Source of the DNA: Prasinococcaceae sp. CCMP 1430
Taxonomy: Eukaryota; Plantae; Prasinodermophyta
NCBI GenBank assembly: GCA_013416795.1
Contig: RQSC01001045.1
Location: 41,312 to 105,311, forward strand
Length of the DNA: 64,000 nucleotides
Direction of reading: 5' to 3'
Shown here: positions 30,360 to 38,272 of the stretch, in pieces
Numbering within the stretch: the stretch's first letter is position 1
Layout of the letters: every line of letters begins with the position of its first letter
Made by a program: the position numbers and the translations under genes
The notes under the pieces: generated by a model
What the model was told of the DNA's origin: nothing
Databases searched by the model: none
Seen by the model: the letters and a program-made list of their open reading frames with translations, nothing else

Positions 30360-30593
30360 GTGCGCCCTCGCGGCGCGCCTCGGCAGCGCGCGCGAGCGTT
30401 CGCCGGTGTATGTGCGTGTGTTTGTCGGCTGCACACACACACACGCGGACTGACACACACGCACACACACACACGCACACATTCACAAACACAAACACAC
30501 ACGAACACACACACACACGCACACACACACACACGCACGGACCACACACACACACACACACACGCACAAATTCACAAACACACACACATACAC

Positions 30594-30665
<72 letters not shown>

Positions 30666-30733
30666 GCGAACACGCACGCACACGCATACGCGTTTCTCGC
30701 GCTCCCTCGCGGTGTGTCTCCCGCACGGCGCAG

Positions 30734-30892
30734 GTGCGCGTGATCGAGGCGGCGCAGCGCGTGGCGGTCTTCGACGACGCGCTGGGCGACGCGGCGGCCG
30801 AGGCGTCGCTGCGCGCGCTGGCGGACGCCGGCGCGGCGCGCCAGCCCGCGGCGGTGTACCGCTACGAGCTCAGGCTCACGCGACGCGCTTGA
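30734..30892 (+). CDS. Terminal exon of an unidentified gene
   Basis: CGCAG acceptor at 30733; [52 protein letters not shown] with strong GC3 bias. Confidence 0.5.
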
Positions 30893-30899
30893 GGCCCGC

Positions 30900-30933
<34 letters not shown>

Positions 30934-31046
30934 GCACGCGCGCACATACATGTAATACTCGCGCGCAGGAGCGCCTGCGTGCACACGTGCACCCACACCC
31001 ACACACACACGCGCCCGCCCGCACACCCGCGAGTGCTCACGCACAG

Positions 31047-31160
31047 CTCGCCGAGACCATGGGCGACGACGAGGTGGCGGCGCTGCTGCGCGAGCACGGC
31101 GCCGCCGGCGCGCTGCAGCTGGAGGGAGGGAGCGCGCGCGCCCGCACTCGCCCCGTGTGA
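31047..31160 (+). CDS. Terminal exon of an ankyrin-repeat-like protein
   Basis: CACAG acceptor; [19 protein letters not shown] fits the second half of an ankyrin repeat (LA...G..EVA.LL.EHGA). Confidence 0.55.
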
Positions 31161-31189
31161 GCGGTGCATCGCTTTTGTGTGACTGGTGC

Positions 31190-31245
31190 GCCTCTGCGCG
31201 CTTGCGCATACGAGTCGCGTCTGTGAGATGTGTATGCTCGGGTTT

Positions 31246-31305
<60 letters not shown>

Positions 31306-31317
31306 ACACACACACGT

Positions 31318-31357
<40 letters not shown>

Positions 31358-31432
31358 ACACACACACACACACGTGCCTCCGCGCGCTTGCGCATACGAG
31401 TCGCGTCTGTGAGGTGTGTATGCTCGGGTTTG
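31190..31432. repeat. Two ~57-bp direct repeats (31190-31246 and 31376-31432, 2 mismatches) flanking a (CA)n array
   Basis: GCCTC(T/C)GCGCGCTTGCGCATACGAGTCGCGTCTGTGAG(A/G)TGTGTATGCTCGGGTTTG occurs twice. Confidence 0.9.
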
Positions 31433-31546
31433 TCTGTGCGACACAGGTCCGCGTGTGCATGTGCGTGTGCGTGTGTGTGCGTGTGTGTCTGTGGTGCATT
31501 TGAGTGTGCGTGCGTGCGCAGCGTGCGCGCGCGCGCCGCGGCGCCT

Positions 31547-32165
31547 TCACTCTCGCACGACCTCCCCTGCGTCGGTCACGGCGACGCCGCCGCTGCTCGC
31601 GTCCGCCTTGCGCTGGATCCACGGCACCGTGGCGCCGCCCTCGCCTGTGACGCGCACGAAGTTTGTCTGCGCGGACGAGCGGCACGAGCCACACGCCGCC
31701 GCCGGCGTCGTGGAGGACTCGGAGCACTCCGTCGCGTTGTCGGGCAGGCCCACGTAGCCGCACTGTGCGCGCATGCGTGCGCGCGGGTGTGCGTATGCGC
31801 GTGCGCATGCGCGTGCGCGTGGGTTAGTGCATGCCTGCGCGTGCACGCGAGTGCGACCGCAGCGGAACACGCGAGCGCGCGAGCGCTGCTCCGAGGCGGC
31901 GCACCTGCCAGCAGATTGCCGCCCTGCCCACCGAGTGGCTCTGTTTGCCGTCCGGGCCGTCCTTGAGCACCGCGAACAGCGCGTTGGCGGAGCCGATGCA
32001 CGCGCGCGCGCACTCCGCCAGGCCGGCGCGCAGGAAGAGCTCCGCGGCGTTGTGGAGGTTCCTCGGGAAGTTGGCCTCCCGCTCCTCGTCGGCCGAGTTG
32101 GGCACCACCTTGATGCGCGCGAGCGTCGGCGTCGCGCTGCACACCTCGCGCGCGCCCGCGGGCAT
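31547..32165 (-). CDS. Small two-exon protein with a CxxC...CxxC zinc-ribbon-like motif; intron 31763-31904; start could be at 32258
   Basis: Phase-0 splice gives AICWQ|[27 protein letters not shown]. The intron has a GTGCGC donor, CTAAC branch point and CACAG acceptor. Confidence 0.7.
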
Positions 32166-32385
32166 GTATCTCTTCGGAATCCTTGGAATCCATCTGTGCT
32201 TCGCTCGCCTTCCACGCTGCCGCCCTGCCCGCGTCGTCGCGCGTCCGCCGCGCGGCATCCGCCCGGCCNGAGGCCTTTAAACACGGCAGGGAGAAGGTTT
32301 TCGTCAGATAAATTTTTTGAGGCGCCAGGGTTCAGCGGACGTGACGGCGGCGACCCACAGTGGCCGTCGGCGGCCGGGAGTCCTA

Positions 32386-32432
32386 TATCAAAATGCACCT
32401 ACCTCCCAGAAACCCTGATTACATCAAAATGC
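32386..32432 (+). promoter_or_regulatory. Two (T/C)ATCAAAATGCA motifs upstream of the sulfotransferase-GT8 gene
   Basis: Copies starting at 32386 and 32422. Confidence 0.5.
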
Positions 32433-32959
32433 AACTTACAATGCGTGCATGGCTTTTGCAGCTCCCTGCCAGCGGCATGTCTCCCGTTTTTATTGTGAGA
32501 AACGGGAGACACTCCCTTGGAAAACTCACGGTTTGATATACAAATGCATGCAATATGTAGAATGCAATTTGATGTGAAAGTGGCGGAGCTGAGCAGCCAG
32601 CGAGAGCTCCTGTGCACGCATTTGATCGTACGCGCGCAAATTCTTCGCCGGCCAGGCGGGGGCAGCCTAACAGCCATCACAGGCAGGGGGGCGCCATCGC
32701 TGCTGCCTGCGGTGGCACAAGGCGCGCGCGGCGCGCGGCGCCGCCGGCGCGCGCCTGCGGGGCGGGCAGCGCCGCTCGTGCGACCGTCGGCGCAGAGGGG
32801 GGAGGGGTGCTCGCTGCTGTTCAGTCTTTGCGGCGGGGCCTGCTGTTGCTGTGTTGCAAGCCCGCCACAGGCGCCCCTCATTTTAGGGAACGCAGTCCGC
32901 GGCACCGCGGCCCGCGCTACCGGCGAGACGAAGCTGTGCTGAGCGCCCGAGAGCATGAT

Positions 32960-35900
32960 ACGCGCGCCGCGCGGGCCCTCGTGTTCCTGCCGCTATGCTT
33001 CGTGCTGTGGACGGCGCTTACGCTATGGGCCGCCTTCGTTCGCAACTCAATGTCACTCAACCAAAGCGATGGTGGCATGACCACCCACGCCGGCTGCATC
33101 GACATCACTGCGGAGGCTGCTACGTCCGTGACCACTCGCGGCGGCGGCAACAGTAGCAGGGCACGGCACCTGTGAGATGGGGCGGGCCTGCACCGCGCGC
33201 GTTCGCAAAGGGAGGCCGAGCTCGGTCCAGGGACGCTGCGAGCGCTGGTGAACGGCCTCACGGTGGTGCGAATGGCCGAGAGGCAGCAGCTGTGGCAGAG
33301 ATCCCCGCGCGATGACAGTGATTCGACCAATGCGCGGCCTGGAGACGACGCGCGACCGCCTCATGCGCGGCTGCTGTTGGCGAGCGCCGAGGAAAAAGAG
33401 ATTACAGGGGAGGCGTCAGATCACGGGAGCGTCGCGTTTAGCCAGATGGAGAGCGCGGGGGCAACGGACACTACAAGGAAGCAGCTGCGGGCGTCTGAAC
33501 AGCTACAGACGCCCGCCACCAATGGTGACCCGGCAGCGCCTTCACGTCGCGCATGCGCGCCGACGTATTTCATTGTCGGCGCGCGCAAGGGCGGAACGAC
33601 CGCGCTCTTCCGATATCCCAATCGGGCGAGGCGATCACGACCTCTGGCGAACTCGGAAACCAAGGCCAGGGACGAGTTGCAAAGGCTCGTGCGTGAGTGC
33701 AACGGACACTGGTTCCCTGCAGAAGTGCAGCCGTCGGCGGGGGTCGATTTGGGCGATGCTGCCGACCAACTTGAAAGTGAAGCCGATGGGGAAGACGGCA
33801 CTGTGACCGGCGCTGCCCTGCATCATCGCGGTGACGTCCTATTGCCAATTGCAGGCGAGGCGTCAGTGGCGTATGCAGCGACGTGCGGCGCGATGGAGGC
33901 GTTGGCGGCAGCCTGTGGCAGCAGCGTGCGCATCATTTACATCTTACGCGAGCCGCTGGCGCGCGCACAGTCGCAGTTTCTCATGCGCGAGCGACTGTCG
34001 CCAGGCCTGACGTTGCCACGTCATGCCTCCTTCGAGGAAGTGTTCGCAGACGATGTAGAGCGTTTTAGGCGCTGGCAGCTCAGCACGTCCCGAAATGTGA
34101 CGCGAGCACGAACCGCGACGTCGGAGGCGGGCACAGAGGATGCGCTGCAGCAGCCGTGCTGGGGGGGAGCTTGGCCCAACAATTACGTGTGGGACGGCCT
34201 CTACGATCTCCATCTGCGGCGCATCATGCGTGCCTTTCCTGACGCTGGCAACGGAAGGCGCATGCTCGTGCTGCGCTCTGAGGACGTTTGGGCGCACCCT
34301 GAAGAGGCACTGGGGCACGTCTTGCAGTGGCTGGGGGTGGCCAACGAAACGCACGTGCAGCTGCCCTTCGGAAAGAAACGCGCGCAATCGCCTGCTCTTG
34401 TGAATGCTAGGCCATCCAAGCTGTCAGAGGCAACGCAACGAGCCGTGCGCATGTCATCGCGCACGAACCGCGCGCCCAGTGGGCAGCGCGCGGCGCAGCA
34501 GCTGGCGCCAGGAGAACTCGGAGCTGGCACGGAAAGTCAATACCAAGGTGACGAGCGGCTCCTCGTTACATCTGCCACGCGCTCGCTCGCCGAGGCAACC
34601 TTCGCGCCACACAACGCTGCGCTGCGTGCACTCTTGGAGGGACCTCTACGTGCTGCAGCATGGCGGCCCTCTTCGGCATCTGAGTCATCAGCCGCAACAC
34701 CAACATCGGTGCATCATGCTGCGGCTACTAGCAATGACACGAAGGAAGAGACTCAACATATGATGCATGATCAGCGTGACACTTTGACAGGAGATCGTGC
34801 TCTCGACCGCGGTGGCCGCAGGCAACTCCTCGCGCAGGGCGGAGGATCGAAGTGGGCATCGGGCAGCCGAATTCATGACAGGATCGTCAGCGGCACGAAT
34901 GGAGCAAGCTTTAAAGGCGCACGGTCGAAGAGAGGAAGAAGGGCCGATACCGCGTCATTCCTCACAACCAGTAGTAGCGACGAATCAGAGAAAAACAAAC
35001 CTTCAAGCTCGTGGGTAGAGACAGACACGCTCCCCGCCTCTGTACCCACCCTGCCGACGAGCGACATTTCTCTTCATTGCGTGCAAGGGGCACCTCCGGC
35101 TTCAGAATCACACGCGGTGGTCATGCCAGTCGACACATGGCCGGGTTTCCCCGCACCCGTATCATCCTCGGTGCCAGATGCAGGATCACTGCGCGTGTCT
35201 ACCGGCTCGGAGCAGAGGGCTGGCGCTGGCATCGCGCCCGCCACACACCGGCCCGTTGTGATGACTGCCGAGGAGGCGCAGTGGTGGCTCACACGCCCGC
35301 TCGCCCTGGCGTGGAGCCTGCGGTATGGAGAGGGTGCCACACGCGCGCGAGTGATTTTCCTGACAACGCGCGCAGGTGCCGAGCGCATTGACGCCCTGAG
35401 CTACCACCGTGGCAACGTCTCCACGCGGTCAAGCACAAACATCACAGACGTCGGGGGAACGGACCTGAGCTGGCTAGGTCGCGCGATGAAATGGCTGGAC
35501 ATGCGCGTAGTAGCCGCAGACATGCCTCTCGAAGAATCTGCCTTCGACGCCGACCACCTCGCCGACCTTCGCGCCGGTCCCAACTGCTGCTCTTGGCGTG
35601 AGTTCTTCATGCTGCGTGCGTGGGGTATGACGGAGTACGCGCGCGTGGCTGTGGTCGACACCGATCTCTTCTTCGTGGGCTCGCTCGACCCCTTGCTCAC
35701 TTCTAAGTGCTTCTCGGGCCAAACGTTGGCCTCCGCCGCGCGCGGTACTCCGCTGAACGCAGGCATGATTGTCATGGAGCCGTCGACGAGCGTCCTCGCG
35801 GAGATGATCGATGCCCTGCGCCGTGGGGCGTACGATCCTGCGTACGGCTGGAACGCCGAGGGGTGGCCGATGAGCCTCGCGCAAGTGCGTGCCAACAACA

Positions 35901-36918
35901 CGCGCACGTGCGCCCTGTGCGGCCGAAGGAAGGTGATGATAGGCGGCTCGTCTGTGGTCGTGCCGCACACGCACGGCGCAGAGGGGCCGCAGGGCTTTCT
36001 CTACTGGTTCTTCACCACCGCCGGGCGCTGGGCCGCGCAGGTTGACAGCGCTGGTGTTGGGGGGGCAGAGCTGTTCATACGCACTGGCACGGCTGGACAC
36101 GCGCGGCCGGCCACTCGCACGCTGGGCGCGCACGCGCAGACGTCCCGGCACACGACGCGCGCACGGGCGGTCCTGCGCGCGACGAGCGGTGGCGCGCATG
36201 GCGATATGCTCTATCATGGCGTCGGCAGCGCCTCAGAGTCGGAGGTGGGCCACGCACGTGGCGCACTGCGGCTGGTGGACGGCTGCGAGTGGAACCTGCT
36301 GTGCAACGGGGACTGTGCGTGCGCGCACGCCGCGCACGCGCCACCGCAACGCATGGCTCATTGCTCCGACTGACCTGCACCACCAACGACACTCTCCTTA
36401 CACGCGTGCCACGTACCGGCTGACGCCGTCCTACGCCGCCAACCAGACCGAGATCAGTGCGGCAGCGCCCCGCCCGCCCCGCGCGTGCTTCACAAGGTCC
36501 GCGCGCGCGGGGACACGACACACAGAGACATAGAACGGGCACTCATTACGAGCGCGCGCACGCTTTGCCGTGCCCCCCCCCCTCCCCCCCAACCCCAACC
36601 CCGCCCCACGTGCCACTGACATTCGCGAGCTCCTCCTTCTGCCGCCTCGTGTCCCCAACCCGCTTTCTCGCGAAGGCCTTCGATCGCTGCCCGCAGGAGA
36701 CTCGCGCGCCGTTGGCCGCCGCCAAGGCAGCGGCGCTTCGCGCGCTACGCGAGGCGCTTCCGGAGGGCGCTGCAATTGCGGCGTCCGCCGCCGCGGGCGG
36801 GGGCACGCAGGGAGGCGCGATCGGGGCGGGCGGCGCTCTGCTGGAGTCCTCAGCTGCGCGTGCTCAGATGGGCAGGAAGGAGTACCGCGGCGTACTCGGC
36901 GGTTCCCGTCGCGCCTAG
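32960..36918 (+). CDS. Golgi-type sulfotransferase (HS3ST/NDST-like) fused to a GT8 (glycogenin/PGSIP-like) glycosyltransferase; late introns about 36315-36446 and 36497-36696; 5' structure uncertain
   Basis: 5'-PSB FIVGARKGGTT, 3'-PB ILREPLARAQSQ, GLYDLHLRR, LRSEDV, FAPHNAAL. GT8 motifs FMLRAWGMTEYARVAVVDTDL (DxD), LNAGMIVMEPS, PQGFL. An in-frame TM helix (ALVFLPLCFVLWTALTLWAAFV) lies at about 32975-33040, upstream of a TGA at 33173 that sits in a GTGAGA donor-like context. Confidence 0.82.
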
Positions 36919-37018
36919 CAGTAGAGGAAACACATCTTCTCCACATGCTCGACGGCGTGCGCGCGCTACCTCCGCGAGCGCGCGTTTTGTCTCGGCGTTG
37001 ATCAGTGCGCGCGCACCC

Positions 37019-38272
37019 CTACGCGTCCTGCTCCGGCTCGAGCCGTAGCCTGCTGTAGATGGCGTACCGCACGGAGTCGCCCAGGTTTGGGCCACCAGCG
37101 TGCTGTAGCCACGGATGAAAAACAATGAGAGTTCCGGGCACCGGCGCGAGAATGGGCACGGCCTCGGGCGGCTCCGGCGGGCGGGCGCCACCCATTCCCG
37201 CGCGCTCGCACGCCCCTGCACCCGCGCGATGCTCGGGTCTGTGCGAGCCCGGTCGCACCCACAGGCAGCCGTCCCTCTCCGACCGGACCGGCGACAAGAA
37301 CACGCCCACCACAAAGTCCAGCCGCTTCTTGGAGTTGTACTTTTCCGCGTCGGTGTGCCAGTCCATGCGGCGCAGCAGCGGCGGCAGCGCGTCGCCGCCG
37401 CCACAGGCGTCCGCCGACGGGTAGAGCGGGTAGCGCAGCGCCACCTGCGCTCCCCACGGCTTGGTGCACATGCGCCGGCCGCCCAGGGCGGCCTCGGAGA
37501 GCGCCTGGACGGGCCCCCTCACCAGGTCGCGCAGCGCCGCCTGCTGTGCGAGCGAGCACGTACACCTGTGCCCACTGCCCAGCTTCACCAGCGGCGCGGC
37601 GCCCTCCTCGGCGAATTCCGAGCCTATGGCGCCCTCCTCCACGTCCTCGACGATGTTCGCCGAGCCGAGAAAGTGGTTGAGCACGCGCAGCGCCGCGGAC
37701 ACCTTGCCCTCGGGACATGCGCCCGGCACTACCACGTACCCGTCGCGCTCGTACGCCGCCGCGAGCGCGACAGCGTCAGCGCGGTCGAGCCCGCCAGCTC
37801 GCGTCTGCGCCTTCGCCTGAGCGCCTGCTCGCGCGTGCTCGCTCGCTGGCGTGCCGGCAAGCGAGTCTGCGCCACCGCCTGTGCCATCGCCGTCGTCGTC
37901 ATCTCTGTACCACACCGCCTCAGGCGAGCCCGCGCGCACCAGCCGCAGCGCGCCGCTGCTCGAGTCGAATGCGAGCGCGTGCGCGGGTGCGTTAGCAGGC
38001 CGTAGCTCCACGCCCGCGCGGACGGGCGCCGCCGCCGCCCCCTCGCCACCGCCACGCCTCGCCTCATCCTCGTCGCCGTCGCATCCGCCGCCGCCAGTGC
38101 CCTCGCAGGCTCGGGCGAGCGACCACAGGCTCACGCCCGCGGCGACGTCCGCTGCGAATTTGACCGCGCCAGCGGCGGACTGCGCTCGGCCGTGCACGAG
38201 CCGCGCGTACGGCGCGCCCGGCCGCGCGAGCAGTGGCGCCCCCACCCCCGCGCACACCCACGCAACACCCAC
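37019..38272 (-). CDS. Phytanoyl-CoA dioxygenase (PhyH)-family Fe(II)/2-oxoglutarate oxygenase; start uncertain
   Basis: YERDGYVVVPGA, WHTD (HxD), GCLWVRPGSH, PGTLIVFHPWLQHAGGPN...RYAIY. Confidence 0.87.
   Translation of the reverse strand: MGVAWVCAGVGAPLLARPGAPYARLVHGRAQSAAGAVKFAADVAAGVSLWSLARACEGTGGGGCDGDEDEARRGGGEGAAAAPVRAGVELRPANAPAHALAFDSSSGALRLVRAGSPEAVWYRDDDDGDGTGGGADSLAGTPASEHARAGAQAKAQTRAGGLDRADAVALAAAYERDGYVVVPGACPEGKVSAALRVLNHFLGSANIVEDVEEGAIGSEFAEEGAAPLVKLGSGHRCTCSLAQQAALRDLVRGPVQALSEAALGGRRMCTKPWGAQVALRYPLYPSADACGGGDALPPLLRRMDWHTDAEKYNSKKRLDFVVGVFLSPVRSERDGCLWVRPGSHRPEHRAGAGACERAGMGGARPPEPPEAVPILAPVPGTLIVFHPWLQHAGGPNLGDSVRYAIYSRLRLEPEQDA

Follow-up and report, generated by a model that had tools for sequence, protein, structure and literature searches.

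The window analyzed here is a stretch of 64,000 nucleotides of contig RQSC01001045.1 (assembly GCA_013416795.1). Positions 33176-36918 (+) of this window are one gene of the green picoalga Prasinoderma coloniale, in which a sulfotransferase (ST) is joined to a glycosyltransferase (GT) of family GT8. Both domains are found on one spliced transcript contig and in one open reading frame (ORF), at the level of assembled contigs. We give a probability of about 0.6 to the reading that this is a single nuclear gene encoding a secretory-pathway protein with two enzyme domains, both of which would be active. The two halves are known kinds of enzyme, and the protein is a variant on them rather than a new kind. 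A methionine in place of a family lysine in the GT8 domain and a TGA codon between the membrane anchor and the enzyme domains are two concrete reasons for doubt.

The window is eukaryotic DNA with a GC content of 63-72%, and its ORF list and translation contain an ORF of 1041 codons at 33248-36373 (+) that spans both domains. The original prediction, which was made from the window sequence, took 32960-36918 as one uninterrupted frame. This cannot be maintained, because a TGA lies at 33173-33175, the unspliced frame ends inside intron 1 at a stop at 36371-36373, and two introns must be removed. Its end point of 36918 was correct, being a real stop codon after splicing. As shown in Table 1, the coding sequence after the TGA consists of three exons.

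The transcript was examined with four public sequencing runs aligned to window 32100-37600, among which X1 is RNA-derived and X5 is DNA-like. Contig 4 of X1 (4274 nt) is unbroken over 33667-36314 and then joins 36314 to 36447 and 36493 to 36673; the X5 contigs run through both intron sites unspliced. A transcript contig of the Joint Genome Institute (JGI), L001 (5781 nt), covers window 32637-36314 and has both introns removed, and its product P0153 (1182 residues) holds the stem, the ST, the linker and the GT within a single ORF. The prediction of a single gene is supported by two spliced transcript contigs, L001 and X1 contig 4. A close relative of the gene is present on a genomic scaffold of 10.5 kb from a Tara metagenome (L002), at 98.4% identity. 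This scaffold retains both introns and has a spliced ORF of 1294 codons that is whole, anchor included; its indels are all multiples of three, and a gene of the phytanoyl-CoA dioxygenase (PhyH) family lies downstream as in the window.

The UniProt entry A0A7R9TJ60 (PRCOL_00007068, named "Sulfotransferase", 904 residues) was found by cluster look-up to match the spliced product over all 904 residues. Its gene model begins inside the ST, past the loop that binds the 5'-phosphosulfate (PSB loop) and the glutamate base, so that it has neither stem nor anchor, and its GT8 half is unnamed. The spliced C-terminal product is the same in A0A7R9TJ60 and P0153, and the natural proteins P0153 and P0152 are identical to the spliced model.

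Table 1. Features of the fusion gene and its 5' region, in window coordinates.
Feature	Positions	Strand	Basis or remark
Non-native upstream stretch, with a lone N at 32269	32165-32579	.	without counterpart in the Tara relative
In-place complement (not reverse complement), 55 nt	32886-32940	+	four runs, all with the same letters; rebuilt version equals L001
Anchor ORF (MAALLRHES...SRARHL)	32918-33175	+	ends at the in-frame TGA 33173-33175
Main-ORF exon (stem, ST, linker, most of GT8)	33176-36314	+	first ATG 33272; no stop throughout
Domain of PAPS sulfotransferase type	33560-34500	+	family profile, predicted fold, conserved residues
Ser/Thr/Ala/Pro-rich low-complexity disordered linker, about 250-265 residues	34501-35254	+	unspliced in RNA contigs
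GT8 (glycogenin-like) domain, first part	35255-36314	+	profile, fold, motifs
NCC..E motif	35582-35623	+	translation
Met replacing family Lys	35609-35611	+	alignment of 42 sequences
DxD (DTD)	35657-35665	+	translation
NAG..PS motif	35753-35785	+	translation
EGPQGF motif	35972-36013	+	translation
Intron 1, 132 nt, GT..AG	36315-36446	+	joint in X1 contig and L001; retained in X5 DNA contig and Tara scaffold
Exon 2, 47 nt, last codon the conserved GT8 His (36491-36493)	36447-36493	+	RNA-derived contig, translation
Intron 2, 179 nt, GT..AG	36494-36672	+	alternative cut 3 nt rightward gives the same product; 165 nt in the Tara relative
Exon 3, coding part: GT8 end (KAFDRCPQ...), Ala/Gly-rich tail, stop 36916-36918	36673-36918	+	spliced translation

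By family and predicted fold, the ST is a carbohydrate sulfotransferase of the heparan-sulfate 3-O-/N-sulfotransferase type, which uses 3'-phosphoadenosine 5'-phosphosulfate (PAPS). The original prediction had made the same assignment from the two PAPS-binding motifs, and profiles, fold and the kept invariant columns agree with it. The 5'-PSB motif PTYFIVGARKGGTT is at 33560-33601 (GARKGGTT), and the motif that binds the 3'-phosphate (3'-PB), RIIYILREPLARAQSQ, is at 33929-33976 and contains REPLARAQSQ. All of the invariant columns of the family, G.RKGGTT, G-E and R.P..R..S....R, are kept. The translation of the window alone matched the Pfam family Sulfotransfer_3 with an E-value of 4.6e-4, which is below the cutoff; the same family (PF13469) is matched by 42 of the 42 aligned ST relatives. 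A profile of these 42 relatives matched the bacterial sulfotransferase 3rnl (3e-31), HS3ST3 (1e-28 to 8e-28) and NDST (3e-19) in the PDB, and 3rnl, NDST1 and HS3ST3 were also the best folds for the AlphaFold2 (AF2) model of the domain, which has a mean confidence (pLDDT) of 75.5. The predicted catalytic base, the glutamate of GETGFF, is present in the transcript, in the four runs and in the Tara scaffold, and is missing from the window itself.

The GT domain is, likewise by family and predicted fold, a GT8 domain of the glycogenin-like kind. The alignment of 42 sequences gives a family signature of NCC..E..KL...(x)DxD, NGG..PS, EGxQGF, C..N and C...HK. The P. coloniale GT keeps the whole of this signature except the lysine; the DxD, the Q-G, the two cysteines and the histidine are all there. 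The C-terminal histidine is found in 41 of the 42 relatives and is encoded here only once intron 1 is spliced out, in the motif PRVLHK of the spliced reading. A disordered, low-confidence insert of about 85 residues, present in the mRNA, lies between EGPQGF and C..N. Against the PDB, the translation of the window yielded glycogenin at an E-value of 0.27; a profile of the 42 GT relatives, 18 of which match PF01501, reached Gat1 and glycogenin at about 1e-16 to 2e-16. For the AF2 model of the GT (pLDDT 70), all 50 matches listed are GT8 structures, including glycogenin, GlyE, Gat1, LARGE1 and XXYLT1. The DxD-containing GT8 domain of the original prediction is therefore upheld by the DTD of Table 1, the relatives' profile and the GT8 folds. 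The Pfam architecture search that had been suggested gave a less simple result, with Sulfotransfer_3 below the cutoff and no GT8 match for the window translation. All matches obtained with the translation of the window fell short of the threshold, and the two domain calls are significant only through the family profiles.

The linker between the two domains matched no Pfam family. It is open in both the strain and the Tara relative, with 7 substitutions between them, and the chance of an open stretch of 265 codons is about 0.003 by our own estimate from base composition, which is not the output of a tool. The GC content at third codon positions (GC3) is 0.57 in the linker, and GC3 does not tell coding from non-coding sequence here.

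The original prediction also proposed a type-II membrane anchor. A tail of 19 residues followed by a hydrophobic helix of 22 residues at 32975-33040 (2.1 in a Kyte-Doolittle window of 19 residues) is indeed found in the same frame; the TGA nevertheless intervenes in the strain, and anchor and enzymes are joined only in the Tara relative, where CGA replaces TGA and the ATG, the anchor (residues 20-41) and the enzymes are in one ORF. An intron that would remove the TGA at 33173 was considered, as GTGAG begins at 33172, and was rejected because no acceptor preserves the frame at a realistic intron length and no splicing is seen at this site in the RNA contigs.

The intact form of the protein, represented by the 1294 residues of the Tara relative, would consist of a cytosolic tail, a signal-anchor helix, a disordered stem, the ST, a disordered linker and a retaining GT8 of GT-A fold. 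In the Golgi lumen, the GT8 would bind a uridine diphosphate (UDP)-sugar via Mn2+, held by the DxD and the splice-restored histidine, and would extend a growing glycan by an alpha-linked sugar. The ST would then use the lysine of the PSB loop, the glutamate base and the arginine and serine of the 3'-PB motif to move sulfate from PAPS onto the same glycan, and the fusion would keep both activities side by side and in a 1:1 ratio. The activity of both domains, the Golgi location and the product are what we infer from the sequence, and the acceptor is most likely a wall or matrix glycan.

The pairing of an ST with a GT8 domain is not unique to P. coloniale. When the ORF was used as the query of an exhaustive HMMER search, 204 representatives were obtained, which match either query residues of about 100-400 or of about 730-930; a word-index search with the whole ORF matched only the gene's own cluster. 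At least six other clusters at 50% identity carry both families, and all of them have the GT before the ST. One of the GT-ST representatives is CAD7702191.1 of Ostreobium quekettii (658 residues), which is annotated merely as a sulfotransferase-domain protein, and a word search from it gave 12 clusters of about 550-740 residues, mostly on JGI and Logan contigs of about 2 kb. An N-terminal hydrophobic segment is present in most of the GT-ST proteins checked. In trees built for each domain, four GT-ST proteins form one well-supported clade in both, separate from the P. coloniale protein, and P0004 stands apart; it follows from these placements that the fusion arose or was rearranged more than once. 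The original prediction had stated that no characterised enzyme pairs these two domains; no paper describing one was found, but the pairing itself recurs in these clusters. Among the relatives, other combinations were also observed: P0005 (641 residues) has two different sulfotransferase domains, and P0014 and P0046 (1300-2100 residues) have four to six tandem divergent GT8 domains.

The 5' end of the gene is poorly represented by the assembly, and window 32165-33727 is an assembly patchwork. The complemented 55 nt of Table 1 are an artefact of assembly or processing, because no biological event yields a plain complement, and the window has no ATG before the anchor for this reason; the true ATG is at 32918-32920. 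Between window 33614 and 33615, 189 nt (63 codons, in frame) are missing, which are found in all four runs, in L001 (1012-1200) and in L002 (2460-2648). They encode ...GETGFFARP..., which contains the family-invariant G-E with the ST catalytic glutamate. Beyond 32164, the strain's own contig follows the Tara relative and not the window. Window 32166-32268 is also found inside a contig of 378 nt with single-copy depth, the flanks of which do not match the window.

The sequencing depth at 32270-33727, about 1.5 kb that comprise an AT-richer leader and the 5' part of the gene, is about 12 times as high as elsewhere, both in DNA-like and in RNA-like runs (344-547 compared to about 34 for single-copy sequence). 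The abundant version departs from the gene after 33727 and corresponds to P0002, the truncated ORF of Transcript_1878 of the Marine Microbial Eukaryote Transcriptome Sequencing Project (MMETSP). At 33697 and 33699, the window has G and G, where the single-copy contig, L001 and the Tara scaffold have A and A; the two G are taken as letters of the abundant fragment because P0002 has the matching cysteine. This part of the window therefore follows a repeated paralogous fragment instead of the gene's own copy. Over 32637-33760, the window and L001 otherwise differ by one base. A 30-mer at the junction of the repeated fragment was absent from both the window and the JGI metagenome contigs. A third type of 5' sequence was seen in P0003, from ENA metagenome contigs, which has a stem like that of the culture strain and an arginine at the position of 33173; its continuation after the PSB loop differs, which hints at natural variation or at further copies of the fragment. 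Any annotation or construct design that rests on the reference assembly is affected by its unreliability at the gene's 5' end.

Downstream, a convergent PhyH gene is located at window 37019-38272 (-), with its counterpart at 6039-7373 of L002. The 3' ends of this gene and the fusion gene overlap or abut, because the RNA contigs of both genes are merged. Upstream of the fusion gene, (CA)n/(TG)n microsatellites are dense at window 30500-31500, and because of these tracts, long spurious ORFs rich in Cys, Val, His and Thr occur there in several frames.

Several results weigh against the reading of a secretory-pathway protein with two active enzymes. In the GT alignment, the position of the methionine is lysine in 40 of 42 sequences and arginine in one, methionine being found only in the P. 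coloniale protein. The PDB alignment pairs this position with the lysine of the glycogenin TKL motif, Lys86, a residue that presumably contacts the UDP-sugar. Both P. coloniale domains are on very long, unplaced branches of the trees, and a direct Pfam search of the GT domain found no GT8 match. Such features would be expected if the ST were the sole active enzyme and the GT8 a worn domain without catalysis, whose role would be to bind a nucleotide sugar or glycan and simply to position or regulate the ST. Methionine takes the place of the near-invariant lysine in the Tara relative as well as in P. coloniale, the insert of about 85 residues splits the GT domain, and the long GT branch and the absent Pfam match fit as well. 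We nevertheless consider a worn GT8 rather unlikely. The GT8 has lost the lysine but keeps the DxD, the Q-G, both cysteines and the histidine; one relative has arginine at the lysine position, which indicates that the position tolerates change. Between the strain and the Tara relative, dS is 0.0185 and dN/dS is 0.26 for the GT, the lowest of the protein, 0.45 for the ST and 0.47 for the linker, values that are suggestive of constraint on both enzyme domains but come from only 3 to 9 changes per domain and are underpowered. The TGA raises a different difficulty, as it divides the anchor from the enzyme ORF in every strain sequence (the window, the four runs and L001), where the Tara scaffold has CGA, and a hydropathy scan of the main ORF from ATG 33272 found no hydrophobic segment. 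The gene could accordingly be decaying in strain CCMP1413, a change from CGA to TGA having severed the anchor, so that the protein is either not made or is made untargeted from ATG 33272, and is intact only in wild relatives. The 8 non-synonymous and 0 synonymous changes in the N-terminal 110 codons between the strain and the Tara relative point in the same direction. Decay is judged to be improbable to much the same degree as a worn GT8, considering that more than 1100 downstream codons are still open and expressed. Moreover, the 5' sequences observed may derive from the approximately 12 repeated fragments, whose letters the window has at 33697 and 33699; CGA may then stand in the gene's own copy, and rare variants are dropped from contigs.

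Two further alternatives concern the unity of the gene and the target of the enzymes. An assembled contig is no proof of one mRNA molecule, and two adjacent genes, one for the ST and one for the GT, might have been misread as one if the GC-rich spacer were open by chance and overlapping transcripts had been merged. Merging does happen at this locus, as the same RNA contig continues into the convergent PhyH gene, and the GC3 of the linker is low. This explanation is very improbable even so: no stop interrupts the approximately 265 linker codons in either of two strains and the reading frame survives the indels, the locus contains no GT8 ORF that begins with an ATG and has its own anchor, both families are fused in other algae, and the UniProt and JGI gene calls each span both domains. 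A more serious competitor, though still an unlikely one, accepts that both domains are active and places their target in a glycoprotein glycan, a glycolipid or a small glycoside instead of a wall polysaccharide. The sugar and the acceptor cannot be read from the sequence, and the nearest solved GT8 enzymes are directed at proteins, Gat1 acting on Skp1 and glycogenin on itself. Relatives in GT8 also glycosylate sphingolipids. On the other side, the ST is closest to the glycosaminoglycan sulfotransferases, and the P. coloniale genome paper, which counted 83 GTs, did not find the usual wall-polymer synthases, left the wall chemistry open and called for a biochemical study of the wall (PMC7455551).

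The ST-GT8 protein described here and the GT8-ST proteins of Ostreobium and uncultured algae might follow a general design, in which early-diverging and siphonous green algae make sulfated glycans of the wall or matrix by means of single-chain enzymes that add a sugar and then sulfate it. The wall of Prasinoderma, which is thick and multilayered and has no gelatinous capsule (PMC4860620), might then consist of such a polymer. This generalization is offered tentatively, as a possibility that is doubtful at present. If it is true, each fusion directly names a cognate pair of GT and ST. The partnerships between GTs and STs for the sulfated glycans of algae are largely unassigned, and a natural fusion bears on that gap. 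Through the fusion, which occurs in both orders, a single divergent subfamily of GT8 is linked with a single ST subfamily of the heparan-sulfate type, and a defined protein is available for expression and assay.

A literature search found no paper that describes a fusion of GT8, or of another glycosyltransferase, with a sulfotransferase. The closest published example comes from a brown alga, in which an ST is fused to an alpha/beta hydrolase (PMC6418280). The sequence is already public under a generic name, and the described pairing is new only to the literature searched.

Compared to known systems, the ST resembles HS3ST1/3/5 and the ST domain of NDST1 in having the same fold, a GxxKxGTT PSB loop, a glutamate base in GE.FF and an R..P..R..S 3'-PB motif, whereas its identity to them is about 17%, it has long inserts and it is fused to a glycosyltransferase. 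Heparan sulfate synthesis is not known in green algae. The GT shares with glycogenin-1/2 and with Gat1, the Skp1 alpha-galactosyltransferase, the GT-A fold, the DxD, the glutamine of the DQ motif and the C-terminal histidine that binds Mn (Foldseek E-value 5e-10). It differs from them in that its family has NCC..E..KL, EGPQGF and two conserved cysteines, with the aspartate before the glutamine usually replaced by proline, and in that the P. coloniale protein has methionine for lysine, carries the insert of about 85 residues and lacks a direct PF01501 match. The GT8-ST proteins, CAD7702191.1 of Ostreobium and the environmental P0004, P0007, P0016 and P0024, likewise hold both families in one chain behind a hydrophobic anchor and rank with the better matches for each half, P0004 being the best match to the GT domain; in contrast to the P. 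coloniale protein, they have the reverse order, short linkers and about 600-1030 residues. NDST, which joins a deacetylase to an ST, and LARGE1, which joins GT8 to GT49, have partner domains other than those of the P. coloniale protein. They are nevertheless type II proteins in which two consecutive glycan-building activities are joined, with NDST as the nearest ST fold and LARGE1 as one of the GT8 folds matched.

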